A stretch of 64,000 nucleotides of DNA from Marsupella aquatica (GCA_973895155.1 OZ316899.1:3741455-3805454), one strand, 5' to 3'. Counted from the first letter of the stretch, positions 716 through 32,047 are shown. Made by a program: numbers and translations. The notes: generated by a model from the sequence alone, not told the origin.

Positions 716-871
716 TGATATAGGCCGTCCGCCTAATTTGAATAAGTAACCTGAAGTAGATTTGCGGTCTACCACACATTGGCCGTATGCATCATCGGAG
801 TAAGCATGAAAACCAAGTGAATGGATGTGCATTTGGTTGGATTGAGGACCCTGAAATGAAAGGTCCAACAT
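716..871 (-). pseudogene. Ty1/copia RT-RNaseH junction remnant
   Basis: ORF 491-871 contains HAYSDDAYGQCVVDRKSTSGYLFKLGGRPIS, matching the copia YxDADWAGCxxDRKSTSGYxFxLGGxPISW motif. Confidence 0.75.
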
Positions 872-9300: not shown

Positions 9301-9473
9301 GGGCTTGGGAGTGAGCTCCTCTTGGGCCCAAGGCCAATGGAATTGACGCCATGGGCAACGGACGCTTGGGGCGCAAGTTACGGCCCGATCCGGGTTAGGC
9401 CGATCGGGGACCCCAAGCGGCGATGAGACCTGAGGGCCTAGGCATGAGCACTGGGTCGGCCCGGTCACAACGG

Positions 9474-10341: not shown

Positions 10342-12449
10342 ACGGGCTAAGGCACTCCGCTTGCGGATGCCTATCAAGAAAGTTATGGGCGTTGCCAATT
10401 GGTGGCGCGCCCATTATGCGCGATGGGATCCGGTTTGGGGGCCAAATGGTTAGGAACCAAAGCTAGTCCGGGGGTGGCAGGTCTCCAAAAGCATATATGA
10501 GGGGAGTGGTGTCTCCCTGGGGGCTAAGGGCGAGCCGAAGTCGTGAGCCGCGGCGGTCGCGACACTAAGGGAAAACGCCAAACGGAAATGGCGATATCTT
10601 CCCAACGGGAAGTCCGTTGGAGGACTTCTTAGGTGCATTGGAAAGCTCTTGAGAAGGGCTACGCCCTCCTGAGATCAGATAGGTCTGGGGGTGCCGTGGG
10701 TTCTTGTGGTTTTTGGGTGTTAGCTCGCCCGCTTGCCAAATCCTGCCAAACAGCAACCAAGCTGCGTTCAGTCTCCCAAAGGAGCTTGCGTTGGGGAGGC
10801 AAGGCCAAGTAGGTGCGGAGGCTGAGTTCCAAGGGTGCTTGGTCCCTAGACCACCAATGGGGCAAACCGGGAGCGGTTGCTAGAGTCGGGGCCGTTTTGG
10901 TCCCGGCGTGTTGGGACAAGCTACGCTAATTGGGCCATGAGCATGTCCTCAGGTCAGGGCGGTCAGTTGGTGATGGATAGGGTTGAGGGGGAACCCAGGC
11001 CGCGCCCAAGGAAGGAGCTATTCTGGATGAACAGCGGGCGTGGGTTCTGTTTCCGGCTTGTGGCATTGGGAGGACCTATCGCTGATGTCTGTTGAGCTTG
11101 AGTTAGGATGCTAGACTTGGCGAGTTCTAGATCCTAAAAGGTTACTTACCAAGGTGTTTGGTTGCTTGTGCAGATAGGGAGGACCGTTGAGTAGCGGTCG
11201 TGTTAGAGAGCAAGTGCGGCTTCGTATGGGAGGGGCCGCTGGCGGTGCAAGGGGCACTAGGTTGCTTGCTCGAGGTATTCCGTGGAGGCGTTCGGGCACC
11301 AAGGGCACTTAGGCGTGAGTGCTAGGATTGGCGAGGGCGCTGGGTGGCAAGGTCCACCACTATATCGCTTAGTCTGATAATCAGATTATCAAGGATAAAC
11401 TGACTCAAACCCAAGGGGAGTTGGCCAATGCTATCAAGGAAAGGGAGAAGTGGAAGCGAGAGCTGAGGGACGCAGAGGCGGCCCATACTGCAACCAACAA
11501 TCGGGCCATGGCGGAGACCCAGAGGAGGGAGAGGGCGTTGAAGGGGGAGCTCGAGGATATCCGTGGAGCCCTTGAACAGAAGGAGGCCGAGTTAGGGAAA
11601 TCCTATGAAGGGATTATTGTGCTGCAGCAGGAGCTTGCATCCCTGACGGCTAGCTTCAAGGCCAACATGCATGAGAAAGATGACTACCTCAATTAGACTT
11701 ATGCCAAGATGACCAGCTCGATTAGACTTATGCCAAGATGAACGGAGGAAGCGTTGGGGGCGTCCATTGAGGATCAACCATTGCTACCATGACGGTGGTG
11801 GAGGGCTGCTCCTTTTAAGGAGGGCGGACGTGGAGGGAGGAGGCGTGAGTGGGCAGGGCGGGCTCAAATCTCCAAGTTTAGACTTAGGATCAGGACCAAG
11901 AGGTGGCCCTGACACTTAGATTAGTGGGATTGCGGATCCATTGATAAGAGCAACACTTGTGCTCTTGCCTCGCTGTACATAGGTAGATTACAGTTATGAT
12001 ACATTAGGCTTATGCTGCAATGAATTACGCGGATCCATTGCCAGGATAAATACCTGGGCAGCGGGGAGTTGAGGGCCTTCTTCCTTAGCAAGTTTTTAGT
12101 GCACCAACAGGGCTGGGATCAAGTAGTAAAAGAATCTCTTGGTTAGTTATACTGTGACACTTGTGTATATTCATGTTTCCTCATGCCTAAGAGATGAATA
12201 GAGTTGGCCTCATGGCTTAGTTTGCAGATCTTGTGTATGAGAAGTACTGTTTGTATGACAAATGCATGGTATAACTCAGTCAGAAGGAAAGGATCCAACG
12301 GTTGAAATCCAGCGGATTGGAGTTATGACCTAATCCATGCTTGATCACAAGGACCCCTAAGTGACGGCTTCGGAGTAAGGTGACCAATACTCTACCATTT
12401 TGCATTCTCGTGTACACGGTTTTGACATTGAGGAGCGACTGTCAGTCGA

Positions 12450-13010
12450 GTGCTAAGGTGGATTGGGAGATTGCGCAAGTTCTTGGCATTCGGTGGAATG
12501 AACACCGTGAATCAGGCAGGGAAGTTTTGGGGCTGTTTGCTTGAAGAAGCAAGGCAGTTGATACCTACGTATGAAGACGTTGAGCCGGAGCACGCAACCA
12601 AAGAACAAGCGGAGCTTGCGCGATTGTGGGGAATTCACAAAACGACATTCGTAGATACGGAGGAGGTGTTGGAAAAATTCTCGTGGACACCCACCAGTGC
12701 GGAGCTTGACGAATTGCTGATCCGGGAGAATAAGGTCGTGGGGATTAGGGAGGCAATCAAGAACGTAGGGCAGCCACTTTGGGAATTGAAGGGTCACACT
12801 GCGAAGTGGACAAAGGAAGCCATTCTTGGGGAGTATTCAGGCGCTGAAGAGATGAAGCGCAAGGGAGGTTTGGCATTCGCTACTCCAGCAAAGCAAACTA
12901 GGTCGGAGAGACCAATCAAGATGGAATCCGGGCCAGTTAGAGATCGGGCTGTAGAGGATAAAACCATGACAGGGTGGGCAAACAGGTTACCTGTCGATTT
13001 ACAATTATAG
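12450..13010 (+). CDS. LTR-borne accessory protein, domain a (unknown function)
   Basis: 186-aa ORF homologous to B 6740-7100, I 22595-23338 and D1 36500-36780 (EA+..+...++.LKG/LSG motif). Confidence 0.65.
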   Translation: MLRWIGRLRKFLAFGGMNTVNQAGKFWGCLLEEARQLIPTYEDVEPEHATKEQAELARLWGIHKTTFVDTEEVLEKFSWTPTSAELDELLIRENKVVGIREAIKNVGQPLWELKGHTAKWTKEAILGEYSGAEEMKRKGGLAFATPAKQTRSERPIKMESGPVRDRAVEDKTMTGWANRLPVDLQL

Positions 13011-13054
13011 TTCGCAAGAGATGAGGATGAGGTCTTCAGTGTCGTTCAGGATAT

Positions 13055-13678
13055 ATGAATGACACTGGGTTGGAGGGCTTTGTCAGGTTGTCCTGGAGGT
13101 TGGTAGACATACCAGATGAGGATCTGTTGGACTTTGTGGGATGCTGGGAGGCTTCTTCCAACACGACGCTGCTGTATGGAAAGGTGTTCCAACTAACACC
13201 TGCGCTTATCGAAGCCATCTTTGCTTTACCAACAGGAAGGAAGACTAAGGTGGAGCAGAGGAAGACGTTGTCGGATGACCAGTTCAGGTCATTTCCAGGG
13301 CCTTCCACTAAGAATGGGTTTTTCAGGAATCAATGTACCAACCTACATATAGGGCAGCTGATTGATTTCCTGAGAGTCACGTTGCATTGTACCTTGCCGA
13401 GAGCAGAAATCGGCAAAGCCCAGGTATTTTTGGTGGAGAATATCGATGCAAGCCGAGACTACAACGGCTATCTCTTAATGCAGTTGAAGAAGGCATTAAA
13501 TGAAGAGAAGCAAAGCATTGGAGAGGGAGCGGTATCCAGACTAGGGTACCATCTACAATTACTTTGCCGATATGCAAGAAGCCAGTCTTTTGCACCGGTG
13601 TTGCCTATACAGGAGCGGATGCCGATCACTGCACCACTTGAGGAGGTGGAGGAGGACGAGGAGCCTTTAAGCAAATGA
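13055..13678 (+). CDS. LTR-borne accessory protein, domain b (resembles plant-transposon accessory domains of the Transposase_32/PMD type)
   Basis: 207-aa ORF; F..L.W, DF+..W, IF.LP.G, NGF...C, LH...PR.EI motifs shared by five loci. The family resemblance is by eye only. Confidence 0.7.
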   Translation: MNDTGLEGFVRLSWRLVDIPDEDLLDFVGCWEASSNTTLLYGKVFQLTPALIEAIFALPTGRKTKVEQRKTLSDDQFRSFPGPSTKNGFFRNQCTNLHIGQLIDFLRVTLHCTLPRAEIGKAQVFLVENIDASRDYNGYLLMQLKKALNEEKQSIGEGAVSRLGYHLQLLCRYARSQSFAPVLPIQERMPITAPLEEVEEDEEPLSK

Positions 13679-13693
13679 CGCCATGGGAGGAGG

Positions 13694-15169
13694 TTGGCAA
13701 CACCGGCAACAAGAGAACGGGAGCATTCCCCTATCAAGAAGTCAGAGGTAGTAACATATGATGTAGTGAGAAATCCGTTGCGTCGGCCTACTCGTAATAA
13801 TCCATATGTAGGCATCCAATTGGTCGAAAGGAAGATGACTGCCCAAGTGGAGGGACCTGTGGAGGAAAGTCAACCAACAGCAGCCCAACAATATTCGGAG
13901 GAAGAGATCGGGGGCTTTGGAGGAGAGGCCAGCATGCTAGGTAGTCAGGTTAATGTGGATGATTACGACGATGACTATGTTGATCACGGGGAGAGGCCGG
14001 TACCAGGAGTTAGAACGATGGGAAAGTTTTGTAGAAGACTTCCCGCAGTCTTCTATGGCAAGCCCGAGGACCAGAAAACACCAGAATCTCCTCCACCAGA
14101 TGTGACGCCATTGGAATTTGACAAGATGAAGGAAGTTGAAGCCGGGCTACAAGAGAGGATTAAGGAGTGGGGGGCCCGGAATGCAGAACAGGAATGCCAG
14201 CTACCAGGAGGAGAGTGGCCGGAAGAAATAAGACGGCTTAGTGAGAGGCAGGCCGAACCTTTCACTGACTTTGATCAATTACGGGCAGAGGCTTGGGAGA
14301 GACGACCTCGATGGCAGATGCCAGTATCACCTGGGAGGTCAAACTATGCAAGAAATCGGGCTAAGGAGTATGGAGACATGTGTGGACTCTTAGCCTTAGA
14401 AATCTTCGGTAACGAGTTGGAATCCGGGCCATTTCTTAGAAAAGAAGTGGCTAATCAAACGAGACTGGAGGAGGCAATGACGTTGGAGCGGTTAAAGAAA
14501 GACGAGGTGATCGCTCGGCTTCGCTCCATGGAAGCCAAAGTTGCTAAGACGAAGTTTGGTCAACCAACTCAGCAGGATCTCTTGGCTAAGCAGCAGGAAT
14601 TGGAGGTGGCGAACAACCAATTGGAAAACTACCAATTGGATAACCAGCAGATCAAGGAAAAATCGACGAAGGTAGAGCTGGAGTTAGCCAATTCAAAAGC
14701 AGAAGTACAGGGTCTAAATTGCCAGGTCGAGAGGCTCAGAAAGACGGCTAAGGATCAGGCCACCCAGAGCAAGAAGGCTTTGGCAGAAGCCCAAAGGAAA
14801 TATGACAAGTTACTCGACCGGTTGGAGGCCATGCGTGAGAAGCATGATGACGCCATGTGCATAGCGGCCAATGATCACCTAAACCAGGTTCAACAGATAC
14901 GCAAGGAGCTTCAGGAGGAGCTAACCAGGACAAAGCAGGCATGGACGGACGAGGTCACAAAATTGGAAGGCATCAACGACTCCTTGAAAGCAGCCGTAGA
15001 TAAGCAAGAGTTGGAGATCGTGCAGATCTTAAATGAGGAGCTGAAGATGGCCAGGTCCGAGATACAACGGCTTAATGATGAAGTTGAAGACGTATCTCAG
15101 GAATTGGAGGAGGCCAGGGATAAGATGCTCGGGTTGCACAGCGTGCCGACAATCAAACGGAGAAATTGA
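13694..15169 (+). CDS. LTR-borne accessory protein c with a long C-terminal coiled coil
   Basis: Uninterrupted 491-codon ORF; E/K/Q/L heptad-rich C-terminal half; homologous to B 8310-9066 plus 11362-11696. Confidence 0.7.
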   Translation: MATPATREREHSPIKKSEVVTYDVVRNPLRRPTRNNPYVGIQLVERKMTAQVEGPVEESQPTAAQQYSEEEIGGFGGEASMLGSQVNVDDYDDDYVDHGERPVPGVRTMGKFCRRLPAVFYGKPEDQKTPESPPPDVTPLEFDKMKEVEAGLQERIKEWGARNAEQECQLPGGEWPEEIRRLSERQAEPFTDFDQLRAEAWERRPRWQMPVSPGRSNYARNRAKEYGDMCGLLALEIFGNELESGPFLRKEVANQTRLEEAMTLERLKKDEVIARLRSMEAKVAKTKFGQPTQQDLLAKQQELEVANNQLENYQLDNQQIKEKSTKVELELANSKAEVQGLNCQVERLRKTAKDQATQSKKALAEAQRKYDKLLDRLEAMREKHDDAMCIAANDHLNQVQQIRKELQEELTRTKQAWTDEVTKLEGINDSLKAAVDKQELEIVQILNEELKMARSEIQRLNDEVEDVSQELEEARDKMLGLHSVPTIKRRN

Positions 15170-15693
15170 AGAAGTATGCCGAAGCGGGATATGGGTCACC
15201 AACTGAAAGGCTTCCCGTCAGTAGTATGGTAGGCGGAAATATAGTGAAGCCGAAGCCGAGCTCACTATTGTCAAGCGTGACTGGGGGCAAAGCCATGCAG
15301 TTGGTAGCAAATTTGGCAAAGGCGTTCATGGGGCCAAGCGTGGCCGCTCACATTTGTGGTACTGTGGCCCCGAAGGCACCTATGGTAGAGGTAAGTACTG
15401 TGGATCAACTTGGAGCTACGGTAATAGGTTCAGACGATGGTACTACTTCTATGGACGCCCAGAACGTGAAGCCGTGGGTTATCGAGACCGAGCGCATCGG
15501 GGAGCAGACTTGGATTGAGGAAGTTAAGGCAAAAGCTCTCCAAGCCATTTCCCAAGAGGATGCCGATGCAGGAGCCGATGCCGGGGCCGACAAACCAGAA
15601 CCCAAAGTCGAGGAAGCCGAAGGGGTCAAGCCGGAGCCGATGGCAGGAGAAGGTGCAGAGTCGGAAAATTTGGACTTACCCCCGGTCATCTGA
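15166..15693 (+). CDS. Low-complexity E/A/P-rich ORF ending the G cassette
   Basis: 175-aa ORF overlapping the previous stop; same position and composition as 63582-63929. Confidence 0.45.
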   Translation: MKKYAEAGYGSPTERLPVSSMVGGNIVKPKPSSLLSSVTGGKAMQLVANLAKAFMGPSVAAHICGTVAPKAPMVEVSTVDQLGATVIGSDDGTTSMDAQNVKPWVIETERIGEQTWIEEVKAKALQAISQEDADAGADAGADKPEPKVEEAEGVKPEPMAGEGAESENLDLPPVI

Positions 15694-16601
15694 CAATTAA
15701 GGAGGGCCAGTCATTGGTTGGAAGGAGGACGTGGCGGCAAGAGAAGGGCTTGGGCCAGAAGGGCGCGGCCGTTGTAGGATGGGACAAGGCAAGTAACGCC
15801 CTATCGGCTTAGGTAGTATTAGATGCTCGGTTCACACAGGGTTTCGGGCTAGTCAAGTTTTTTAGGTGATAGTTTTTTAGTAGGATTATCGCGGTGGAAG
15901 GCCGTGAGTTGTGGTTAGGATTTCTGCCTTTTCCCCTGAACGCGCTGCAAGGATAAAAACCTGGGCACCGTGGCCCGGGGGGCTTTTTCTTAGTCAAGGC
16001 TTTAGTGTAAATCTGTATTGTTGTGAGCACAGGAAGCTCTCGGCTAAATCTAGACCGCAGGGTATCAGTAAACCACCAGTTCCCTTGGATTTCTGAGCAA
16101 TTGTTTGAATTGAGTTGGCCTCGTTGCATAGTTCGCAGATTCTTGCCATCCAAGAAGTTGAGTGTTATGATATCTGTTGCTTGATCGATTTAAGTCAGAT
16201 AGGGTGAACTGTTGAGCAAAATACAATCGCATTGTCTTGATTGGAGACTGCCCAATCAAACTTTGAGAGAAAAGTGAGGATTGAGAGTGTTTAGTCGGTG
16301 AAGTGTGGGTTGAGTCAGTTTGAAAAAAACCTTCAACCGGCTTAAGAAATTAAGCCATAGGGGTACATTCCGGGGGCAGAATACAAATATACCTGAAGAA
16401 GTTAAAGAGGAATTAGGTGTCTCAGTTGTGCACAATTCACAAGCCCAGTGAAAGAATCGGTCCGGTAAGTGTGGATCGAAAAAGAGGATCGCGTTTCCAA
16501 ACCAAATAGCTACCAAAGGGCAAGAGGACGGACATAAACAAGTGGTTTATGATTGACTGAGGGTAGTTCTTGGGGTTAGAGGTCTTGGAAAATGCGCCAC
16601 A

Positions 16602-18627
16602 GTTATGGGCATTGCTAGTTGGTGGCGTGCAAATTATGCGCGATAGGATCCTGGTTGGAGGCCAAATGTTTAGGGACCAAAGTTGGTCCAGGGGTGACAG
16701 GTCTCCAGAAGCATATATGAGGGGAGTGGTATCTCCCTAGGGGCTGAGGGCGAGCCGAAATCGTGAGCCGCGGCATTCGCGACACTAAGGGAAAGCGTCA
16801 AACATAAACGACGATATCTTCCCAACGAGAAGTCCGTTGGAGTACTTCTTGGGTGCATTGGAAAGATCTTGAGGAGGGCTACGTCCTCCTGAGATCATCT
16901 GGGTCTGGGGGACCATGGGTTCTTGAGGTTTGAGGGTGTTAGCTCGCCCGCTTGCCAAATCCTGCCGAACAATAGCCAAGCCGTGTTCAATCTCCCAAGG
17001 GAACTTGCGTTGGGGAGGCAAGGCCAAGTAGATGTGGAGGTTGAGTTCCAAGGGTGCTTGGCCCCTAGATCATCAGTGGGGCGAACCGGGAGTTGGTTGC
17101 TAGAGTCAGGGCCATTCTGGTCTCGGCTGCTGTTCGTAAGGATTTGGCAAGCGGGCGAGCTAACACCCGCAAACCTGGAGATCCCATGGTGCCCCCAGAC
17201 CCAGCTAAGCTCAGGAGGGAATAGTCCTCCTTGAGATATTTCCAACGCACCCAAGAAGTCCTCCAACTGACTTCCCATTGGGAACATATCGCCGTTTCCG
17301 TTTGGCGGTTTCCCTTAGTGTCGCGACTGCAGCGGCTCACGACTTTGGCTCGCCCTTAGCCCCCCAGGGAGACACCAATCCCCTCATATATCCTTCTAGA
17401 GACCTGCCACCCCTGGACCTGCTTTGGTCCCTAAACATTTGGCCTCCAACCCGGATCCTATCGCGCATAACGGGCTCACCACCAACTAGGAACGCTCACA
17501 ACTCTCTCGTTAGGCATCCGCAAGCAGAGTGCCTTAGCCCGTTGTGATTGGGTCAACCCAATGCTCATGTCTAGGTCCTCGGGTCTCATTGCCGCTCGGG
17601 GCCCCCGATGGGCCCAACTCGGATTGGGCCATAACTTGCGCCCCAAGCGCCTGTTGCCTATGGCGTCAACTCCATGGGCCTTGGGCCCAAGAGGAGCTCA
17701 CACCCAAGCCCTTAGAACTTAGTCCATCTAGAGGTCTGGACGGTCGTCCTTGAGCCCGACCCATTTCCCCTTGACCCAACCAGCTCTCAACTAGCCCAAG
17801 TCCTTACTGTCTGTCACCAGCTTGGCTCCTTACCTTTGCTAGCGCCACGTCTCGTCGCTCACAAGTCTCCCCATGCTAAGTCCTCCCCGGATGGCCTATC
17901 CGAGCCTCGACCATAAGGGAGCTCGGCGTTGGAGTCAGCAACGTTGGAGCTAAGTGTTTCGGTAGTCGAGTTCTGCAACTCTTAGTGTGTGTCACCAGCT
18001 TGGCTTCTTGCCTTTGCTAGCGCCATGTCTCGTCGCTCACAAGTCTCCTCATGCTAAGTCCTTCTCGGATGGCCTATCCGGGCCTAGACCACAAGGGAGC
18101 TCGACGTCGGAGTCAACGACGCTAGAGCTAAGTGTTATAGTAGTCGTGTTCCGCAACTGACAAGCTTGGACCATGAGCATGTCTTGGGCCATGAGCATGT
18201 CTTGGGGTCAGGGCGGTCAGTTGGTGAAGGATACGTATAAGGGGGAACCCGGGCCGCGCCCAGGGAAGGAGCTGTTCTAGACGAATAGTGGGCGTGGGTT
18301 CTGGTTTTGGCTTATGGCATCGGGAGGACCTATTGCTGACCTATTTACCAACGTCTGTTGAGCTTGAGTTAGGATGCTAGACTTGGCGAGTTCTAGATCC
18401 CGAAGGGTTACTTACCGAGGTGCTTCATTGCGTGTGTAGACAGTGAGGACCGTTGAGTAGCGGTTGTGTTGGAGAGCAAGTGCGGCTTCGTATGGGAGGG
18501 GCCGCTGGTGGTGCAAGGGGCACTAGGTTCCTTGCTTGAGGTATTCCGTGGAGGCGTTTGGGCACCAGGGGCACTTAGGCGTGAGTGTTGGGATTGGTGA
18601 GGGCACTGGGTGGCAAGGTCCAGCACT
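16602..18627 (+). mobile_element. Remainder of the A2 5' LTR (16602-17128 and 18159-18627), split by inverted A-LTR pieces
   Basis: Matches 10382-11361; ends CAGCACT at 18627, then TG and the PBS. Confidence 0.8.
17126..18158 (-). mobile_element. Two head-to-tail inverted family-A LTR 5' pieces (termini at 17980 and 18158)
   Basis: Two GTT(C/T)(C/T)GCAACT termini; the block 17810-17980 is repeated at about 17990-18158. Confidence 0.8.
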
Positions 18628-18641: not shown

Positions 18642-20182
18642 GATTGCTGGCATAGACACCGGGCAGGGGTTGTGCTAAGTCGGAATCCAAAAATCTTAAC
18701 AGATTTTTGAGGGGACTTAGTGCTTCAACATGACCGGCGGGTTGACTATGGGCAGATTTGATTGATGGGGACATGGCAAAAAACACTCGATCAAAGAGTG
18801 GCAAACAGGCTCCCTTCGCAAAGAGGAGAGCCCAAGTTCAAGATGAACGGAAGGAGGACGGGTTGACTTCCCTAGACAAAGGTTACAAGCAGGTTGACAA
18901 AGACGTGGCATCCGAACCATCGACCGTCGCAATGAACATGTCAAGTGCAGAGCATCGTTGACTTAAAGGGAAGGAGGTGGCCAATCCTTCAAAGGATGAG
19001 TGGTGGACCGTGCCACCTAGCACCCTCACCAATCCCAACACTCACGCCTAAGTGCCCTTGGTGCCCGAACGCCTCCACGGAATACCTCGAGCAAGCACCC
19101 TAGTGCCCCTTGCACCACCGGCGGCACCTCCCATACAAAGCCGCACTTGCTCTCCTACATGACCGCTACTGAATGGTCCTCACTGTCTGCACAAGTGTTG
19201 CACCCCTAACCCAGGCCTTAAATCCAGTTTAGCTCCATGGGGCGACCTTGACCACCAGTAGGGGTGAGGGTTCGGGCAAGGAGGTGTGTAGTGGCCTGGA
19301 TTGGCCCTAAGTCGGGCTAAGGCAATATACTTATTGGTATAACACTCACGCAACTTGTACTAGTCATAGGTATATTTGTTTTCCACCGCTAGAATATTCC
19401 CACAGTTAGTGACTCGGACTAACTCCCGGCTTGGGGCTTTCAAGCCATCGACGCGACAGAACCTTGTGACATGCAATGGGTGGCAATCCCTACCATTAGT
19501 CCGCACCCGGTACGTCCCTGGAAATGGCGCCTTTGCCCAGACAAAGCATACACACAACATCAGTAACTCGCGGAAACATTAGAGGGAAAAGACTACATTT
19601 ACTCAACGAAGAATCAGTTTACATAGTTGACTCGACTTCTAAGGGGGTCAACAGGCCCAACGGCAGTCAATGCCCAGTCTCTACGAGGCCCCGCCCCACA
19701 CTTGCCCAGCAAGCTTGACTCTGGCTCTCACTCCTTGGTGCGCTCTGACCCTGCTCAGGCCGGGACTCCCCGTGCCTCGCCTTTTCTTATGCTGAGATAA
19801 CTAAGCCTTCTCCCCCTCCCACAGCGGAAAGGGAAGCCTAAATACTACGGTTGCGGAAAGGAACCGGAAGATACTACCTTCCGGGGTAATGCCTACTGAC
19901 TACCTACCCTCTGACTAGCCGACCGCACTCCTTTGACCGGTTGACCGTCGACGACAAGGGCGCTGACCGGAATGGCAGCAGCTAAGTCTACTAACCAAAA
20001 TCTAGTCTGTTGATGGACTCTATCCTACGTTGGCTAATCCTAACTGATCCGGTCCTAATTCTTCCTACTGTGCCGCTAATCGGCGCCTATTGACAGCTAT
20101 TTTGTCATTACGCCTAACCAAAAGATGCCGCTGACTGAACCGCCTTGCGCGGCGCCTGCTTCCACCCTTCGCTAACCACCTC

Positions 20183-23100
20183 TTACGTGCGAGCTGTGGT
20201 CGGACCAGGGTTTGTCCACCTGTCGAGGCGAGACCTCGAGCCGCCTTGATCAGAGGTGGGCCCAGGTCTTCCCCGCTGGAGGACGAGCAGGGTAATGCGG
20301 TCCTGCAAGGCCTTGTTGTCCCGCACAGCCTCCTCCGCCTCGTTTGCAGCTTCATCAACCTCTGTCTGGAGCCGTGCTACCTCCAGGTTGAGCTGGTCGA
20401 TGGAGTCACGATGGGTCTGGTCTTGCATCAGCAATTTATCCCGTTCGGCAGAGAGACTAGCCACCTACTGAGCTGCTTGTAGGAATTGGTTGTTGAGGTC
20501 GGTCAGGCTGGTAACCCGAGCTAAGGATTCTGGGCGCAACTGAAGCACGGTGTCACGTGGACTTTAAGTTAGGGGCTCCTCGGGCAAACTACACGCTTCT
20601 GGCCGCGATCAGGATAGGTGACAAGCACTTTTCGGAGCGAACTCTCACTCCTTTATATTTTTTACTTTTCTCACAAAGTTTACAATAGGTGCCCTCGAGT
20701 AAGCTTGCCCGCAAGAGTCTGGTAGCTGGCCCTACGGCAGGCCGCTACCTCTAACTTATCGGGTAGAACTCCTCGAGTGACTAACTACTCGAAATCTGAC
20801 GGAAAAACTATCCTCCTTAGTTCACAAAACCAAAACTCGACTAGCTACTCCACTAGTCTAAAACAGCTCGCACGGAACTCGGGCCTGGACCAACGAGGCT
20901 CCAGACTCGAGAAAACTCCCCGCCTGGATCAACGAGACTCCAGACTCGAGAAACTTCCCGCCTGGATCAACAAGACTCCAGACTCGAGAGACTCCCCGCC
21001 TGGATCAACGAGACTCCAGACTCGAGAAACTTCCCGCCTGGATCAAAAACTCGCTCAGAACTCCAAAACCGACGCACAACAGCCAAGTCCCACAGAACGG
21101 AGCGAAACTCAAAGAACATAATTCAACCGACCTGAATAGACAACCGGCCACCTCAATGAGCCGAGGCTCAAGTCTAAGTAGCATCAGAAACCCAACCATC
21201 CAGCCTGAGCCAGCTGCCATCAGCGAGGCTCATCCAAACTCCAAGCCTGGTGACTCACCCAAACACCAAACCTGGTGACGACAAGTCACCCAATCACCAA
21301 ACCTCAATCCATCCAACCAAGCAGCCCCTTCAAGTCAGCATGCATGCAACCCAACTGGGAAGCCTCGTCCATCATCCCCTATAAAAGCCATTCGTGAGCC
21401 GAAATCATTTGGCACGACAACGGTGTCGTCCAGCTTCTTGAGATCCGCTTGCGCCCTGCTCAACTCCTGGGTTAGTCCGTCCCGCTGTTCAACGGTGCGG
21501 ACTAACTCCTCACGGCGGGTAGTGGCCTCCTCCTCGAGGTGTTCTACCAGCATTTGGAGGCGCCCGATCTCATTCCCCTTCGCCATGAGTTCTTCTTCCA
21601 AGCGGCTTACAATCCGTGGTTGGTGCTCTAACATGAAGAAGGCTGGTTGAAAGTACGTCGAGACTTGTTGTCCAATGTACATCGCTAGCTCCCCTGACAG
21701 AGTCTGACTAAACTTCTGGACCAGGTCGTAGGCCATGGTCCCCGGGGCTACTTGGTAGTCCTCCATCCTCTCGGGTACCGGTGGTTCCTCCTCTGTAGTC
21801 TGCACTGGGGAAGGAAAGGTTTCTTCAGGTGGTGGCTGTACTGCGGGTAGCGGAGGCTCGACGGAAGGGGGCGGCGGAATTTCAGCAAGAGGTGGTGACG
21901 GAGTACTAGTTGGGGCCTCCGGCTCGGGGTTTGGCTGAGGCACGATAGTCCGCTCACTCGGGGATGCCTCCCTTGGAGCGGGGGTGACATTAGTCGGGGT
22001 TGAGGTGGCCATATTCTTTCCTCTGGCCTCCCGCTATGCCTTGTACCAGGCGAGGATGATGGCGATATGACTTCCCAAGTAAGTCTTCCCCCCAATAGCC
22101 ATACCTCCCTAAGCCCGCTTAAGCTCCCCCGAGAACCTTCGGTAAAAGAATTGGGCCCAGTTCCGCCGTTTGTACTGTTCCACCTGCACAATCATGGAGA
22201 GGGAGATCTCGGATCGTGGCTCAATCATGTGTAGGGTAGTCCGTATGAAGTTAAGCCGCTCCATGCAGATTAAGTTGGTGCACAACCCCTGCTTGTATCC
22301 GTTGTCCGTCTTACCTTTGGGTTTGAAGTGCCAAGGTGTATACTCCTTATCCCGAATTCGGAGTTCAACCGGTATCGGCCCGGTTGGCAGGCAGAAGATC
22401 TGTGCCATCCGATGCTCCGTAAGTGATAAGGTCTGTCTTGAAACCTTGGTGGTCGATGCGTCGGTGTCAAAATTGGAGATGAACTCACAAATCTCCTTGG
22501 GCCCGGCCGTGCACGGTCTCCATAGCAAGTGAGCAAACTGCTCCAACTGATGCTCCATGAGGTAGTCCGCATGGTCAAGTTTCTTGATTGCGATTCAGAC
22601 TACCTCGGGGACGCGTATTACCTGTAATAAGTTAGACTTTGGATTATCCAGGGGAAGTCGGGCCTGGTTGGCCGGGGGGTTAGCCGGGGCAGGTGCAGGA
22701 GCGGCGTTGGTTCGCATTGTCGATTTGGGGGCCGACATCGTCCTTGCCCGCTTATGAGAACGCTGCTCAAGATGCGGACTAACTCGCTCGGAACCCGAAG
22801 AACACTTGGTGTTGTTCATGGGATGGACTTGGGACTGATTTGGGGATACGCCGGTGGTCACCGGTTGAGGGGCTGGTGGGGTCGGTGTAGCCATATCCCA
22901 GTTGAAGGCGTTGGAGATTTCCCCAAGGAACGTAAGATTACGCGTCGCTTCCTGTTGTCTACTAATGTCTTCTTGGCACTTTTTGGCTGCGATCTGCTGG
23001 TCTAGGTACCCCGGGATCTTGTCGAACTCCGCTTGAGTAAGCCATTGGCTGCCCTTCAGCCTAAAGAACATCGCGGGGACTTTGAGAATCGCCTCTGCTA

Positions 23101-23338
23101 CCAATCTAAGCCCTTCCTCGCTGAGATATAGCTCGGTGATGTAGTCTCGCAGCTTGTTGTAGCTAGAATCCCTGGTGATAGCTGTCTTCTCGCAGTTAAC
23201 CTGCGCTACCTTGGCCACCAACTTTGCGTATCTTCTTTCATAAGCAGCTTTCTTGGGACAAGAGTACCAGTAAGTCTTGGAGAACTTAGCACCTACCTCA
23301 CCAAACAAGGTCCAGAATCCCAAGGCTGTAAGGGTCAT
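20183..23338 (-). pseudogene. Family-I accessory cassette: a (22595-23338), b (22109-22558), proline-rich and coiled-coil c (21424-22012 and 20183-20546)
   Basis: Motif-level homology to the G, B and D1 cassettes; frame c is restored when the C LTR and one ACGG are removed (KLDDTVLQLR). Confidence 0.75.
20551..21419 (-). mobile_element. Family-C/K solo LTR
   Basis: TGTCA...CGACA termini; 4-bp TSD ACGG (20547-20550 and 21420-21423); near-identical to 9474-10341. Confidence 0.92.
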
Positions 23339-24516
23339 ACTAACCTTTGTAGTCTGGTTCGTCGAGTCCGTGTTCCTGCTGTTTGGTCCGCTTACTGGTG
23401 GAGGCCTTCCTCGCCCTGACTAAATCTTGCCACAACCCGCTCTTATCCCTCAATGATCTCCTCGTAAAGGTCAGTTTGATTCGAGCAAGAAGGCAAGAGA
23501 ATGGCAGCGTCCGCAAATTTTGAAAGGTAGAAATGAGCAAATGGCCCGCAACGCCATCGACTCCGCTCTTATGGAGGTGCTAGGGTGAGCTTCGGGCGTG
23601 AGTGGGCAAGGTCGTTCCGGTCGTTGATGATGAGTAGAAGTTGGCGTCTCGGTCCAAGCATGATTCTTCTAACAGATTTTACTCCGCCGCCGCCACCGTA
23701 CCACGGTCGAGCGTAATAACCCTCTGTTTTAATTCATAATCATCCGATCAACTAACCTACTCCTAACCTATTCATAATGGCAAAGACGGCTATTCGTGCT
23801 ATTCAACGCTACGGCTACGGTCCTAATGACCGTATAAGACCTAATCTATGACCTGCGTTCGGTTAAGTGACACGTTACCCGTGTCACAACAAGCAACCAA
23901 GCACCTTGGTAAGTAACCCTTCAGGATCCAGAACTCGCCAAGTCTAGCACCCCAACTCAAGCTCAATAGACGTTGGTAAATAGGTCAGCGATAGGTCCTC
24001 CCGATGCCATAAGTCGGAATCAGAACCCACGCTCACTGTCTGTCCAGAATAGCTCCTTCCTTGGGCACGGCCCAGGTTCCCCCTCGTACCTATCCATCAC
24101 CAACTGACCGGCCTGACCTTAGGACATGCTCATGGCCCAATTAGCGTAGCTTGTCCTAAAGTGTGGTGCGTTTTCCAAGACCTCTAACCCCAATAACTAC
24201 CCTCAGTCGATCATAAACCACTTGTTTATGTCCGTCCTCTTGCCCTTTGGCAGCTATTTGGTTTGGAAACGCAATCCTCTCCTTTGATCCACACTTACCG
24301 GACCGATTCTTTCATTGGGCTTGTGAATTGTGCACAACTGAGACACCTAATTCCTCTTTAACTTCTTCAGGTATATTTGTATTCCGCCCCCTGAATGTAC
24401 CCCTAGGGCTTAATTTCTTAAGCCGGCTGAAGGTCTTTTTCAGACTGACTCAACCCACACTTCACCGACTAAACACTCTCAATCCTCACTTTTCTCTCAG
24501 AGTTTGATTGGGCAGT

Positions 24517-27500
24517 TTAAACCCTTCTACCAGTTTTTGCTTCAACTGTATCATAACCGTAACTCGTTCAGGTGTTGGTTTGAAGTCTGACCCTGTTTTG
24601 AGCATGTTGGTTAATGGCAGCGCTAGTTTGGCAAAATCTTGGATAAATCTTTGATAGTAACCAATACAACCCAAGAAAAATCTGATATCTTTTATATTCT
24701 TGGGTTGCATGATATCCAACCAAACTGCCAATTTTCCTTTATCAATTTCAATACCCTTCTTGGATACCTTGTGACCAAGCAAGACCCCTAAGTTACTCCA
24801 AAAAAACATTTATCTGGATGTAGCTTCAATCCCACCTGTCTGCATCTTTCAAAGGTTCTTCGTAAGTACTTGGCATGTTTGGACGCCTTCCCAAACACAA
24901 CAAAATCATCAATGAATATCTCCAGGAATTTCCTTAGGTAGTCGTGAAATATGTTAACCATCAACCTTTGGAACATAGCTGGCGCATTACACAATCCAAA
25001 AGGCATCCGGTTAAACACATAAATTCCCCACTCCGTAATAAAAGCGGTTTTGATCTGGTCCTCTTGCCTGATTCTGATTTGATTATATCCAGAGTAGCCA
25101 TCCATGAAAGAATACAACTCATGGCTAGCTACAGTGTCTAGCACCATATCAGTAAAAGGTAACGGAAAATGATCCTTCAAAGTGGCATCATTTAACTTTC
25201 TGTAATCCTGGCACACCCTTATCTTTGGCTTGCCATCCGGTCCTGCCTTCTTGGGTACAATGACAATAGGAGACACCCAGTCCGAATGGAGAACTGGTGT
25301 AACAAAGCCGGCTTCTACCAACTTGTCGATCTCGGCCTTTACCAACAATGAGTACTTTGGGTTCATCCTCCTCATTGGTTGCCGAAATGATTTGGCTCCC
25401 AACATAAGGTCAATTTGATGCTCCCCCAATTTTGGGTCCACTCCTTGTAAATCCAGGTGACTCCAAGCAAAAACATCCTGGTATTCCAGAAGTAACTCAC
25501 TGATCTCTTTTTTGATTTCAGGAGAAAGATCCCTACCCAGATTTACCTCCCGACCCTCTCCCAACTTGAGCTTCCTGTATTGCTTTGATTGAATCATGTT
25601 GATTTGCTTCTTTAGAGTTGGATCTAGGTCTGCTTCCAACCTGTCCAACCTCATTCCTCCATATACTGGAATTTCGGGCTCCGTGGTTGCTTCCATCACC
25701 TCCGCTGTTGACTCCCCTCGGGAAGAAGTAACTTCTTCAATGATGGTGTTGATCTCCACTGGAGTAGATCCAATCGGCCTCGGCTTGCCTTTTAGCTTTA
25801 TCATTTTCAATCTCATTTTTTAGTAGCCGGCCGACACCTTAGTTCGCTCGGAACAATTGAGTCCAAACTCACTTTATTTATTGTGACAGCAGGTACCCCT
25901 TCTTGAATTGACTGCAACGCCTCCTGATTCGTCTGCGTAGCTGCTTGGTCTGCCGAGTGAGTCTTTGTAAGCGGAGTGACCTTTTCATCAACCAGCGTTG
26001 CCAACTCCGGCCACTGTGCCATAGCGCTTGATGAAAATCCACTATCATGGCATTGGGATCCTTTGATAGAACAAGTTCCTCCACTTGAACCTGTGATTCG
26101 GTTTCTTTATCCATGATAATTGATTCCAAAAAGGCTGCCTCAATTGCGAAGCAATTGTTAGCCGGGACTTCCTGTAATTCTGAATCGCCTTCCTCTATGA
26201 TAGGTTCCATCTGACTCTTCCTTGCTAACATTAGTGGAATTGAAATGGGCTCCTCCTCAATTTCCGGAATGATTGGCCGCATGGAATCTGTGTCTCCCAT
26301 CCAAAGTCCGCTGGGAGGTGTGTTAGGTCCAAACACACTCGCTTCTGATACCCCTGATAAGCATTCTAGCCAACACACATCATCAGCAGATTCTAACCCA
26401 GTATCATAACCGTCTGCTTCACGAATCAACCTGGCTGCTTCATCCTCTACCTCCCATGACATGGTAATAGGTGGAGTTCCAAATGTAAATTTTTTTGTGC
26501 CCCAATTTTCCACAACTTTTGCAAGGTACGACCAGGGTCGTCCTATCAACACCCAAAATGAGGTAGGGTTCACCGGCTTCATCACAATGTAATTGATGCT
26601 GAATGCGATACCACCAATCTCCGTGCGTATTCCTTTAAGGATGCCAGTGGGAACTACCTAATAGCCATTCGCCATATTCAACACCCTTCCTGTCAATTCT
26701 GGTTTGAATCCCCAAGCCATCGCTGTTGAATCAATGAGTATGCATACCCCAGACCCTCCATCAATTGGTACATGCATAACCTTTTCTTTATTGATGATGA
26801 CTGGTAAGCAAGGGGCTCCCCTATCCTCCTGAATCATCATGACATCCGTACGAGTGGCTACTCTAGGAAGCCTTGGCTTCCCAGCAATGGCTTTTTTTAA
26901 CTGCTTCCAAAAATACGGGCTATTCTTTAATAATTGACCCACAGTAGCCGTGATGCGTGATTCCAACACATCCTTTGCCAAGTTGTATGGCACCAGCTCT
27001 TTCCCTGTGTCATCCTCTTGGGGTAATTTAATTGCTCTAAGAGGATTCTCCTGAGTTGGTAATGATTCTGGTTCCTTTGGTTCTAGAGGTGTGCTTGGTG
27101 AAGTCAGTGGTGACACACTTCTGTCCTCCACTATTTTCATTGAAGCGGAAACAATTTCCTCCTTCATTCGCTTGCCAGCTCTCTTAATATCCTTCTGGAG
27201 TGCAACCTCATTCTCGTCCTTTTCCAGCTCTACCAACTGCTCCTTCACACTAGCCGTGACTGCCGGAAAAAATAAACTGGGATGCGTTTGATCAAAATCA
27301 CTATCCTGGGAAGGACTGGGATCACCAGGTACGACTTGCGGGTCCTCATTGACAGGGGCCTTGCCGTTAGAACCCAAAGACGTGGAATCAGACGCATCTT
27401 CCTTCCATGGCTTCTGGTTCTTGATAATTCCCTCCCACCTTTGCTTCCTTCTGGTGGATCTAATGGACACACGGTAACAATTGGCATCAGTCTCTTCTTC

Positions 27501-27659
27501 GGAATAAGTGGACAGGGCGTCTGCTTCATCGTCACAAGGTGCAAATTCCCCTCGTGCTTCTTCACGCCATCCTAAGTCAATATGATTTACCTGGGCTCCT
27601 CCTGGCATTGTTCCTGCCTGCAATACCTTTGGTGCGGGTTTGACAGGTACAGCAGCCAT
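24517..27659 (-). pseudogene. pol: G pol: aspartic protease, spacer, reverse transcriptase (truncated)
   Basis: VPIDGGSGVCIL protease; WVSPIVIVPKK, DYRKLNDATLKDHFPLPF, FMDGYSGYNQI, MPFGLCNAPAMFQR and FIDDF. Confidence 0.9.
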
Positions 27660-27686
27660 CCCGGCTAACCAAATAGCGGCATTGGG

Positions 27687-29180
27687 TCAGTATATGCCCT
27701 TCTCCTTTACAACCCATACAAAGCTTGACTGGCTGACCATTGGCCTGCTTCCTTGCATTGGTGCACTCCCGGGAGAAGTACCTGGTTGACCGCAGTTGTA
27801 GCATGCTGCAAATCTCTGAACATTTGGTTGTGGAGGGGTAGTTGGATTTTGAATGATGCGGGGATACATCTCCCCTGCATTGGTTCTCAATGCTCCCCAC
27901 AAAGAAGTGGGTCGGTTAGCCAAATCTTGGGCTCCGACCTCACTAATGCCGAACACACTATCTGCGGCATCTCCAAGTATGTACTCCACCTCCAACTCTC
28001 CTATCGTTCCCTCGGTTATCAATCAAACATGCTTAGTACCACGCTTTGGACAAACATCCTTGTGATGTCCGGTGGTATAACAGTGAGCGCACCATAATGA
28101 GGTGTCATTGGCTGGCTCCTTCTTCACCGGCTTTGCGTTGGCTAATAATGCCTTCAACTGCTCCGTGATAGCTGTCAACTAATCCGGAGATGCCTTCTTG
28201 GGATCCAACTTGGTTTTCACCTTTTCTGCAACCCTTTTTTTTGTGATTTTCTTTTTCTTACTCCTATCACCATCCTCCAAGCTGGAAGATGTTTCACTCT
28301 TATTGGTATCACTCTCAGAGTTACTACTCTCCTTGGCTTTCTTGGATCGCTTCTTCTTGGCCTTTTTCTTGCCGCATTTCTCCTTTGAAGATGAATCCTC
28401 AGACTTATAGTGTTTTTTCCTGCTCGTGATATCTGCATTGATGTAGAGCTGAATATCACGAATCACCTCCGCCAAAGACTCTGGATTCCCCTTCCAAATC
28501 GCGAAACTCATCTTCTGAGGTAGAGCATTAACCAACCACTGCAACTGCATTTCGTCTGATGCATTGGTCTTGGTTTGTCGCACCAATTTGTGGAATCGTT
28601 GCAAGAATTTCCGGAAAGACTTGTTCTCCTTGAATTGAAGCCGTCCTAGCTTCAACATTGCCAATTCAGACGTCCCAATGGGACGGAATTCCTTGACAAA
28701 CAACTGCTTGAAGGTGACCCATTCATTTTTCTCCCTTGGTTCCAAATTGGAGTACCATGGTCGAGCCTCACCCTTAAACAACCCGGGTAAGATCTGCATC
28801 TTGATAGCGGACTCTCCATTAGCAGTTGCAGTCCCATCAAACTCCTCAAGCCAGTCATCCGGATCCTCCTCATGCTTACCATGAAATGCTTTGTAATGGA
28901 TTCGTGATCTCTGACTGAGCTGTGGTGCTGCTCGCCCACCAAATTGTGGATCCAACTCACCCATCTCTTGCACTGGTGAACTGGGTTGGGTACTGGGCGC
29001 GTTACTACTCAACAGATCCCCTCCCTCGTTCTCTAGTTCCACTCCAAATGCACTTTGTGAACTGCCATTGCCGATTGCAGTCTTCACCCTCTTGGTCTCC
29101 CTCCACCTTGCGATTTGCTGCAACCGCGCTTCTTCCCTCAGTGTTGCTCGCTCTTCTCGTGGTGTGAATTCGTTCATCAC
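27687..29180 (-). pseudogene. gag: G gag with zinc knuckles
   Basis: FHGKHEEDPDDWLEEF...LFKGEARPWY capsid-like region; CYNCGQPG and CMGCKGEGHILTQC knuckles. Confidence 0.85.
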
Positions 29181-29217
29181 CTAACACTGCACAACAAACA
29201 ATTCACAAGTAAGAATG

Positions 29218-29236
29218 CCCCCTCCATCTAGCGCCA
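29218..29236 (-). promoter_or_regulatory. Primer-binding site of G, probably tRNA-Asn
   Basis: TGGCGCTAGATGGAGGGGG four bases after the LTR-terminal CA; the tRNA assignment is recalled from the plant tRNA-Asn 3' end. Confidence 0.75.
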
Positions 29237-29767
29237 AAAATGTGGTGCGTTTTCCAAGACCTCTAACCCCAATAACTACCCTCAGTCGATCATAAACCAC
29301 TTGTTTATGTCCGTCCTCTTGCCTTTTGGCAGCTATTCGGTTTGGAAACGCGATCCTCTCCTTCGATCCACACTTACCGGACCAATTCTTTCACTGGGCT
29401 TGTGAATTGTGCATAACTGAGACACCTAATTCCTCTTTAACTTCTTCAGGTATATTTGTATTCCGCCCCCGGAATGTACCCCTACGGCTTAATTTCTTAA
29501 GCCGGTTGAAGGTCTTTTTTAGACTCACTCTACCCACACTTCACCGACTAAACACTCTCAATCCTCACTTTTCTCTCAGAGTTTGATTGGGCAGTCTCCA
29601 ATCAAGACAATGCAATTGTATTTTGCTCAATAGTTCACCCTATCTAACTTAAATCGATCAAGCAACAGATATCATAACACTCAACTTCTTGGATGACAAG
29701 AATCTGCGAACTATGCAACGAGGCCAACTCAATTCAAACAATTGCTCAGAAATCCAAGGGAACTGGT

Positions 29768-32047
29768 CAAGAACATCTGCCAGCGCATTTCCTTTGGGTT
29801 CAACCTTGGCTTAGAACTGAAGTACTTGGTCGGCGAGCTATCTGTGTGGATTACCACTTTCTGACCGTTCTTAAGGTAAATCTCCCACTTCTTCAACGCA
29901 TAGATCACAACATACATTTCCCTTTTCGGTGTGATCCAATGATTTTCCAACTTACACAACTCAAAGGCCACAAGACGCCCATCTTGGTGAAGACAGGCGC
30001 TAATGGCATAATCACTTGCGTCTGTCCAAATCTCGAACGGCTTCCCCATCTTAGGTAACTTTAGAACCGGCGGCGTTATCATTAATCGCTTAAGTTCTAG
30101 GAATGCTAACTCGCAATCCTCTGTCCACGCAAACACTTTGTTTTTCAACATTAGCGCGATTAGGGGCCTCGCGATCCTCGCATAGTATTTCATGTATCTC
30201 CGATAGAACCCCATAAATCCTAAGAAGGCTCTAACCTGCCTTACATTGGATGGGCGCTCCCATTATTTGATCTCCTTAAGTCCTGACTAGGCATAATCCC
30301 TTCCGGGGTAAAGGTATGGCCGAGGAACTGAATCTTGTTCATTGCAAACTCGCACTTGCTAGGTTTAGCAAAGAGACGAGCCTTACGAAGGCGAGAGAAC
30401 ACTTCTCTGAGCAACTGCTCATGTTCCTCCAACATTTTTGAGTAGATTAGGATGTCTTCAACAAAGACGACCACTCCTTGGTCCAACAAGTCATGAAAGA
30501 TGGTATTCATCATCTTCATGAACGTTGCGGTTGCATTACACAACCCAAACGACATAACCAAAAACTCATAGGATTTGAACCTTGTGCGCATCGCGGTCTT
30601 ATACTCATCTCCCTTAGCCATGCGGATCTGGTAATACCCAGACCACAAGTCCACCTTTGAAAACTTCCTAGCCCCAGAGAGGCAATCAAAGAGGTCATCC
30701 ATGTGAGATAACGGGTACTTGTTCTTTACTGTCTGCTTATTGAGGGCCCGATAATCTGCGCACAATCTCAAAGTACCATCTTTTTTGGACACAAACAGCG
30801 CGGGCACCCCATAAGGACTCTTACTAGGACGAATGAACCCTTGGTTGATCAACTCGTCCAAGGCGTTCTTCAACATCATTTGTTTGTTTAGGTTCAAACA
30901 ATAAGGAGCTTTAGCTTGAGGAGCCAAACCTAGCTCCAACTCAACTTGGTGATCCACTTCTCTCCGCGGGGGTAAACCTTTAGGTAGCTTCTGCGATAGC
31001 AAGTCATTGAATTCCTCTAAAATTTCAGGAATTTGATCGTAGTCGGGCCCGACCTTAGCTGACTTAATCTTTGGCTGCGAAGCAACCTCCTTAACTGGGT
31101 GGAGATGAAAGAAGAAACATTCATGTCCACCCTTGAAGTTTTTCCACCATTGCTTTGCCGATACACACGGAGACAGCCACGACACTTTACTTACTTTGAG
31201 AAATCTTTCTTTATTTTTGATAACTTCGTGTACAACGATGGGCTCACCGCCCTTATTGGGAAAATGGAGCACTTCACCCCCCGGTTTTAAGGTAACATTG
31301 TGCTTTCTAAGATAACCTACCAACAAAATGAAGTCTATGGCTAGACCGTCTAGAATGTAGAACATCTCCTTACTAACAAAATTTTGTTGTTTGCCTATGA
31401 CCTCTACTCGAAGTCTATGTACTACTCTCAACACTATCCCGTTTGTGTCATTGGCGAACTTGCACACTAACGGTTGTAGCAACTCTTGGACGTCCACCCC
31501 AAGATGTGTCGCCACCTGCCCACTTATGAAGCAGGCAGTCACGCAGGTATCCACCAAAGCAACACCCAGATTACCGTTAGAAGTGACATTCACAAAAATC
31601 AGTTTTTCAAGATCCATTGTCTTAACTTTAGGTATCTTCTCTCACAACACCTTCTCTCCGGCAGGAACATCCCCTACAGGAACCTTGCTAGCTACTAAGG
31701 GTTTGGTTAATGCGATACTTACCTTAATGCTCTTCTGCCCTCCATCTCCGCTTGGCTTGCCACCTTTTGTGGAACAATCCTTACTTTGATGGCCCATGGC
31801 ACCGCACGTGAAGCACGAACCTTCCTCCCACCTCTGCTCCATGAGGGCCTGCTTCTTTGCTTTCTGCGCTGATGAGGTTCCTTTCTTGAAGTTGTCGGCC
31901 TTATGGTTTGGCTTAGCTTCTCCATTCTGGGGCTGGGGGTCCGAACCACCAGCCCCTGCCCCCTTAGGTTGCTTATGCTTATTCCTGGGACCTTTTGCTT
32001 TCCCAACTTCCCCCTCGGATCTTAGCCCGGTGTCTATGTCAGCAATT
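29768..32047 (-). pseudogene. pol: A3 internal region: gag C-terminus (CCHC), protease, RT, partial RNaseH; most of gag deleted
   Basis: CFTCGAMGHQSKDC; ALVDT; [15 protein letters not shown]; DLWSGYYQIR; WTDASDYAISACL. Confidence 0.9.

Follow-up and report, generated by a model that had tools for sequence, protein, structure and literature searches.

A 64,000-nucleotide stretch of DNA from the liverwort Marsupella aquatica (GCA_973895155.1, OZ316899.1:3741455-3805454; "the window") contains two units, I and D1, that are likely to be solo long terminal repeats (LTRs) of liverwort Ty3/gypsy retrotransposons. The LTRs of these elements would be 3-5 kb long because each of them contains one complete accessory gene. 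A first-pass annotation of this DNA had placed the coding region inside the LTR, and the evidence favors this idea: I and D1 are single units flanked by target-site duplications (TSDs); the ends of the related units G and B recur next to a primer-binding site (PBS) and gag; and in an element from another liverwort, Calypogeia fissa, the homologous gene lies upstream of the PBS. In these families, the coding region is very probably part of the LTR itself. The positions of the features are in Table 1.

We begin with the ends of the two units. Read on the minus strand, unit I starts with TGTGACACGG and ends with GGGGTGCAACA. When we compared the window to itself, the sequences on either side of unit I (18999-19195 and 23889-24161) were joined in a paralogous copy (32062-32522), with an overlap of 5 bp, so 19196-23888 is an insertion. 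The empty site is also present in contigs from public DNA runs (for example, as the joint 19192->23891). Unit D1 (TGTGAC...GTGACA, 2861 bp) has an exact empty site at 30625-30660, in a paralogous copy of pol. Both units have TG...CA ends that form a short terminal inverted repeat, and both have a perfect 5-bp TSD (ACAAG for I, and TGGTC on both sides of D1). When the halves of each unit were compared to each other, we found no direct repeat (the best matches were at chance level). A Pfam scan of the encoded proteins gave no match to gag or pol within I or D1, and neither unit has a PBS-like match. Overall, as would be expected for solo LTRs, these units contain no PBS, polypurine tract (PPT), gag-pol, or second copy of an LTR. 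The ends, the duplications, and the lack of internal repeats and of a PBS and gag-pol had been noticed in the first-pass annotation, and they are now backed by empty sites. Since I and D1 have LTR-type ends and duplications but no inner repeats, they are not the products of deletions within an LTR-internal-LTR structure.

The coding part of unit I had been described as a cassette of three open reading frames (ORFs), namely a (23338-22595), b (22558-22109), and c (22012-21335). We found one gene instead. The three ORFs share a frame, with only stop codons between them, and ORF c continues into a foreign element, S, of 873-877 bp (20547-21419), which the three-ORF reading had missed. Once the nested element is removed, the frame runs on into a fourth piece, a coiled-coil ORF (20464-20183). 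Because all four pieces are in frame, they are one broken gene and not three genes. The native gene has 760 codons, from 23338 to 20183, and four premature stops. Its frame contains just 5 stops in all (including the four premature ones), versus 20-45 in each of the other five frames. Copies of the I family that lack S, with the joint 20546->21420, are found in contigs of two of the public runs (X3 and X4). The protein would have an N-terminal region followed by a PMD/DUF1985 (VANC-like) domain, then a linker rich in proline and, at the end, a long coiled coil.

Unit I is an old, dead copy of a family with many copies. The family is abundant in the public DNA runs, and unit I differs from the family contigs at about 300 of about 4700 places (roughly 6%), mostly by transitions. 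Four premature stops, a nested insertion, and this many differing places imply that the copy at 19196-23888 is dead. Two of the stops, at 22595 and 22111, are TGG and CAG in all of the other family contigs, so these two breaks are private to this copy.

Element S is about 870 bp long, starts with TGTCGC, ends with CACGACA, and has 37-bp tandem repeats. The window has three copies of it (20547-21419, 9474-10338, and 61476-62326), with 87-91% identity, and they were inserted in unit I, in the foreign LTR that is nested in unit B, and in the leader of a B-type element. ACGG flanks two of the copies. We found no recognizable protein in S. It could be a solo LTR, or else a small element that is not autonomous.

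Units B and G link this kind of unit to complete retrotransposons. The first-pass annotation gave them the same layout as I and D1. They are indeed gene units, collinear with each other across the whole gene, but B is truncated at its 3' end and G at its 5' end. The two lie side by side, and a deletion took the 3' end of B, about 122 bp of the host element, and the 5' end of G, which is why neither has its own pair of TSDs. The intact 5' end of a unit of the G kind, TGTGAT, is supplied by B. The gene of G is in four pieces (186, 207, 491, and 175 amino acids), with two frameshifts and one stop.

That the 3' end of G is the end of an LTR, as first proposed, is borne out by its recurrence at 29767->29241. 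There it is followed by TTTT, the PBS TGGCGCTAGATGGAGGGGG, gag (PF03732), and reverse transcriptase (RT; PF00078). The pol of this G-type element is cut and is joined to the last 355 bp of the 3' LTR, so both LTRs of the element are remnants of something longer. A B-type LTR, which aligns with G to its very end, ends near 62711, and a gag-like ORF with a zinc knuckle lies about 1.2 kb downstream (including a nested element).

Two other observations concern B-type elements. The 5' end of a second B-type LTR, TGTGATGCC, is at position 269, and this LTR exits the window at its start (1-269). It lies 220 bp from a fragment of a Ty1/copia RNase H (491-871, minus strand), and no PPT adjoins its 5' end. 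Also, 51383-52749 and 59080-60347 are direct repeats of 1.2-1.4 kb, with 94-95% identity, that lie 7.6 kb apart. They are probably from a complete younger LTR element for which the B-type element's gag region was the insertion site.

The C. fissa element, which we call L001, provides the most complete view of the arrangement of the gene. Its RT and gag are 65% and 41% identical to those of the G-type element, and the 19-nucleotide PBS is identical in the two liverwort genomes (29218-29236 in the window and 13656-13674 in L001). A direct repeat in L001 starts at 8738 and again at 19927, right after integrase. The homologous gene, at 9917-11557, lies between the LTR start (8738) and the PBS (13656). 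The two repeats are 94-95% identical, and the first 1.6 kb, which includes the start of the gene, is repeated after pol, up to the end of the locus that we fetched. By this comparison, the 5' LTR of L001 would be about 4.9 kb long and would contain the whole gene. We found no pair of LTRs within reach of the homologous genes in C. fissa loci L002 and L005 or in Logan contigs L003 and L004. The 1.3-kb repeats of L005 were considered as LTRs and rejected, as they are RT-coding pieces of another element.

Two side observations relate to C. fissa. The window is a dense nest of transposons, and among annotated proteins, the closest relatives of those in the window come from this leafy liverwort. 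Near the PMD-like gene of L005 (about 5 kb away), and beside the RT-coding repeats, is an ORF (16220-17107) with a Tet/JBP 2OG-Fe dioxygenase domain (PF12851, E = 1.8e-11).

Table 1. Features of the window that relate to the gene-bearing LTRs. Positions are counted from the first nucleotide of the window.
Feature	Position	Strand	Basis or remark
Unit B: LTR with intact 5' end (TGTGAT) and gene; nested foreign LTR and S at ~9054-11361; 3' end missing	6364-12288	+	Self-comparison
Unit G: LTR lacking ~170 bp of 5' end; 3' end (...CGCCACA) intact	12289-16601	+	Self-comparison, ORFs
TSD ACAAG, left copy	19191-19195		Single copy in paralog at 32253-32257
Unit I: probable solo LTR, 4693 bp (~3820 bp without nested element), TGTGAC...GCAACA	19196-23888	-	Ends, empty sites, no terminal repeats
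3' non-coding part of LTR, with hairpin and CAAATATACC	19196-20182	-	Motif comparison
CAAATATACC, TATA-like	19378-19369	-	183 bp from LTR end of unit I
Hairpin GGCTTGAAAGCC..AAGCC	19446-19428	-	In 3' non-coding part of unit I
LTR-borne gene, last part, coiled coil	20183-20546	-	Premature stop 20467-20465, natural stop 20185-20183; in frame with first part once S is removed
Nested secondary insertion S, TG..CA, 873-877 bp, splits the gene	20547-21419	+	Self-comparison; family copies without S
LTR-borne gene, first part, codons 1-640	21420-23338	-	Premature stops 22597-22595 (TGA), 22111-22109 (TAG), 22036-22034 (TAG)
Conserved PMD/VANC-like domain ("ORF b")	22112-22591	-	Domain conservation and fold comparison
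5' non-coding part of LTR, AT-rich stretch ~100-190 bp from LTR start	23339-23888	-	Candidate promoter of the gene
TSD ACAAG, right copy	23889-23893		Read at right flank of unit I
G-type 3' LTR, last 355 bp, deletion-joined to truncated pol	24162-24516	-	Self-comparison
G-type internal region: gag 28179-29180, RT 24788-25816; pol cut in RT/RNase H linker	24517-29217	-	Pfam PF03732 (gag), PF00078 (RT)
PBS TGGCGCTAGATGGAGGGGG	29218-29236	-	Identical in C. fissa element L001
G-type 5' LTR, last 527 bp, 95% identical to G	29241-29767	-	5' side cut, abuts truncated chromovirus pol
Unit D1: probable solo LTR, heavily decayed homologous gene, TSD TGGTC	35962-38822	+	Ends, empty site, homology
Unit D2: D-type LTR, 795 bp, whole gene absent (134 bp in place of D1 493-2691)	42130-42924	+	AGGAC on both sides
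B-type LTR (3' part, exits window), then leader, S insertion, gag-like ORF with zinc knuckle (61533->60337)	62711-64000	-	Alignment to G

Units D1 and D2 suggest how the gene relates to the rest of the LTR. The gene of D1 is more decayed than that of unit I, and D2 has no gene. The homology of D1 and D2 stops at the start of the gene (D1 position 492) and resumes 170 bp before the end of the LTR. Because one unit has the gene, the other does not, and the break is at the start of the gene, the gene behaves as a module. D2 lies directly after a pol with a chromodomain (41264-41584) and a short purine run, GGGGAGGA; nonetheless, it has AGGAC on both sides. If D2 is the 3' LTR of the adjoining chromovirus, then LTRs with this gene would occur in two different lineages of Ty3/gypsy elements.

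Is the gene maintained by selection? The middle domain is 27-38% identical among I, D1, G, and B, whose DNA can no longer be aligned. Across 576 aligned codons of B and G, the proportion of nonsynonymous sites that differ (pN) is 0.31, and the corresponding proportion for synonymous sites (pS) is 0.83, which is saturated. The differences at the first, second, and third codon positions number 216, 157, and 358, and shifted frames do not have such a pattern. Selection across copies was one of the checks proposed at the outset, and this pattern points to divergence of B and G under purifying selection.

A profile search with the domain matched 65 representative proteins among 1.8 billion. We looked up the ten top-ranked matches: four are from C. 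fissa and the rest are from contigs of public runs and metagenomes. On one contig of this sort, the sequence that precedes the domain matches the N-terminal region of the unit I protein. A search of the protein atlas with this region gave no usable match. A word-indexed protein search with the 207-amino-acid G domain had no match in the allowed length range, and an exact database look-up of the 491-amino-acid ORF of G returned no record. Pfam matches for all of the ORF pieces were limited to weak coiled-coil noise, with no match to PMD or DUF1985, and a sequence profile search of PDB came back blank.

The AlphaFold model of the G domain, from an alignment of 23 sequences, is confident (pLDDT 88.5). 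Compared to PDB with Foldseek, its match is weak (E = 1.5), with VANC21 (PDB 9lnj) ranked first. Atlas models that contain PMD, DUF1985, ATHILA ORF1, or Transposase_32 have TM scores of 0.60-0.67 to the G-domain model. The predicted structure thus places the domain in the PMD/DUF1985 (VANC) fold group by its shared fold, and not in any Pfam family, as the Pfam gathering score is not reached.

The non-coding parts of the LTRs have conserved motifs as well. A hairpin (GGCTT..AAGCC), a CATTCC..GGAAT pair, and CAAATATACC are common to D1, D2, G, the G-type 5' LTR, the B-type LTR, the C. fissa LTR, and I. Across the units, CAAATATACC is 183-227 bp from the 3' end of the LTR, which is downstream of the gene. 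The LTRs have the following layout: TGTGA(C/T); about 0.5 kb of non-coding sequence with an AT-rich stretch; the gene; the hairpin and CATTCC..GGAAT.CAAATATACC; about 180-230 bp; and ..ACA, which abuts the PBS in full elements. The ORFs had been placed between a TATA-like region and a conserved 3' end. An AT-rich stretch is indeed present near the start of the LTR, but the conserved TATA-like element, CAAATATACC, lies on the other side of the gene.

Another motif, GGTTAG, has 7 sense-strand occurrences in the non-coding parts of unit I (19196-20182 and 23339-23888); the coding part has none on that strand. We rejected the idea that it forms an array of binding sites, because D1, D2, B, G, and the C. 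fissa LTR show no enrichment of it, and because we chose the motif after seeing it. Its distribution in unit I is possibly due to chance.

These motifs suggest how a gene might come to be in an LTR. If the genomic RNA has its core promoter in the conserved CAAATATACC element, then the gene, which is upstream of it, would be in the U3 region, and the genomic RNA would carry the gene at its 3' end. The PPT would lie upstream of the gene, so that reverse transcription would copy the gene into the 5' LTR as well as the 3' LTR. In other words, the element may have an ordinary sense-oriented accessory ORF at its 3' end, with a PPT that moved upstream of the ORF. Recombination between the two LTRs would leave the gene behind in a solo LTR. 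The AT-rich stretch 0.1-0.2 kb from the LTR start may drive the gene separately. The target of the protein might be its own element, at the level of chromatin or DNA, and the protein might counter silencing there, like VANC21.

We considered other explanations for these units. I and D1 could be internal-deletion derivatives of elements with short LTRs, and the gene would then be an ordinary accessory ORF of the internal region, either between pol and the 3' LTR or before gag. This is the only place where accessory ORFs of plant Ty3/gypsy elements have been described (PMC7264820), and it would fit with D2, a D-type LTR of just 795 bp without the gene, and with C. fissa L002, where 3.5 kb separates the last pol ORF from the start of the gene. 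But a derivative with two short LTRs needs a direct repeat between its ends, which I and D1 do not have. Also, the repeat in L001 begins right after integrase and spans the start of the gene, which is upstream of the PBS, and the remnant of the G-type 5' LTR is at least 527 bp long, with a 5' side that is cut rather than ended. We consider this explanation to be largely refuted, and it seems very unlikely. It is similarly improbable that the units are mobile elements of another kind, with a single gene, that only resemble an LTR in their ends and 5-bp duplications and are mobilized in trans by an integrase. The abundance of the I family, and the lack of a visible I-type internal region in the window, would make sense for such an element. 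However, units that are collinear with them (G and B) occur as 5' LTRs ahead of a PBS and gag, and the 3' motifs are common to I, D, G, B, and the C. fissa LTR. Nor do we know of any mechanism for the retrotransposition of a lone LTR.

It could also be that there is no functional gene family, and that the ORFs are chance frames, or a fragment of a host gene that was captured once and has been decaying neutrally within LTRs. Every copy in the window is broken, and none has a Pfam match at the cut-off, as expected if this were so. But decaying sequences would not account for the strong bias towards changes at third positions, with pN well below pS, between B and G; for the 65 representative proteins that match the domain profile; for the confident predicted fold; or for the sense codons in all other family contigs at two of the four premature stops in unit I. 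We give this idea almost no weight.

Some observations do weigh against gene-bearing LTRs. We saw no full-length I or D element, and the LTR status of I and D1 comes from their anatomy and their relatives. As D2 demonstrates, the gene is not an obligatory part of a D-type LTR. Only the first 1.6 kb of the 3' LTR is in the L001 locus, so we did not directly see the whole gene duplicated; the earlier proposal that each element has two copies of the coding part is supported for the start of the LTR and the start of the gene, which do recur after pol, but not beyond. All four copies of the gene in the window are pseudogenes, and so the suggestion that the gene survives the formation of solo LTRs is not true of these copies. 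At the cut-off, the protein belongs to no Pfam family, and just 2 of 23 members match Transposase_32 (E = 1.3e-3). Finally, the five public runs with matches consist of fragmented contigs, and none of the five is on record as RNA, so we infer the promoter, the boundary between U3 and R, and expression.

How do these LTRs compare to known systems? Mouse mammary tumor virus has a superantigen gene, sag, in the U3 region of its LTR, downstream of the polypurine tract, and the gene is copied into both LTRs. A complete protein-coding gene inside an LTR is also what we see here, and it would similarly be in U3 if CAAATATACC is the core promoter. Unlike sag, the gene is from a plant retrotransposon, makes up most of the LTR (2.3-3.6 kb), and encodes an unrelated PMD/VANC-like and coiled-coil protein. 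The LARD and Sukkula elements of cereals, which are non-autonomous, have giant LTRs (4-5 kb) and many solo LTRs, and their LTRs are regarded as non-coding. The LTRs in the window are likewise long and found as solo LTRs, but they are coding.

Among plant elements, Athila, Tat/Ogre, Retand, Grande, and RIRE2 have a conserved accessory gene beside gag-pol in most copies of the family (PMC7264820), as these elements seem to. For Athila the resemblance extends to the protein, as our domain model is similar to the ATHILA ORF1 and Transposase_32 models at the level of the fold. However, a review places the accessory ORFs of plant LTR retrotransposons in the internal region (PMC7264820), in agreement with what the first-pass annotation stated for Athila, Tat, and Ogre. 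Here the gene is between the LTR start and the PBS (L001) or inside a TSD-flanked unit (I and D1), and it is kept in solo LTRs. In text searches of the literature, LTR-encoded genes came up for retroviruses only, and searches about liverworts, PMD, or VANC gave nothing of this kind. We did not find a gene-in-LTR layout described for plant retrotransposons. This locus adds one broken gene, its location upstream of a promoter-like element, and variants of the LTR with and without the gene.

The fold suggests a connection to silencing. VANC21 is the anti-silencing factor of VANDAL21, a Mutator-like element of Arabidopsis (PMC5735166, Hosaka et al. 2017). It was the first-ranked structure for the G-domain model, if only by a weak Foldseek match (E = 1.5), but the identity is 7%, with no match at the level of sequence. 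The gene in the window is also on a class I element and inside an LTR, its protein has a long coiled coil, and the functions of VANC21, namely sequence-specific DNA binding, loss of methylation at its own element, and anti-silencing, are putative for this protein. One review treats PMD as Ty3/gypsy-derived and confined to angiosperms, and suggests that transposons could produce PMD proteins of their own to counter silencing (PMC8616336). Among the PMD proteins (PF10536) are MAIN and MAIL1. Models from PMD-bearing clusters have TM scores of 0.62-0.64 to our domain, while neither the window proteins that we scanned nor the 23 aligned members match PMD in Pfam, and the hosts are liverworts.

We also considered whether having a VANC/PMD-like factor in the LTR might be an adaptive strategy. 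Each insertion would have two copies of the gene, both with promoters, and each solo LTR would keep one. The family would in this way build up, across the genome, the dosage of a protein for anti-silencing or self-recognition, with motifs in its own LTRs as the targets. We find this doubtful. If it were true, neither class I elements nor bryophytes would have a precedent for such a system, and D1 and D2 would show the module being gained or lost as a unit.

More broadly, LTRs are regarded as regulatory repeats without coding content, and they are masked by annotation pipelines. With a conserved gene of about 760 to over 1000 codons within the LTR, the annotation of such elements and of their many solo LTRs would need to change. 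A PPT upstream of an accessory ORF would be a simple route to duplicating the ORF. The PMD/VANC fold, which is known from silencing and anti-silencing proteins of angiosperms, would be linked to class I elements of an early-diverging lineage of land plants, and the idea that transposons carry PMD-type factors to counter silencing becomes testable in liverworts.

The window holds a fifth copy of the PMD/VANC-like domain, at 48339-48878 on the minus strand (182 amino acids, 26% identity to the G domain, E = 1.6e-11). This copy is in a Mutator-like context, which recalls the VANC genes of VANDAL elements. As for the chromovirus sequences, 29768-32021 and 34578-39704 are inverted copies of the same gag-pol and are 91% identical. 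The copy at 29768-32021 is cut at the border of RNase H and integrase, where the final 527 bp of the G-type LTR is joined to it. This joint and the fusion of RT to an LTR (at 24516/24517) look like deletion or template-switch joints.

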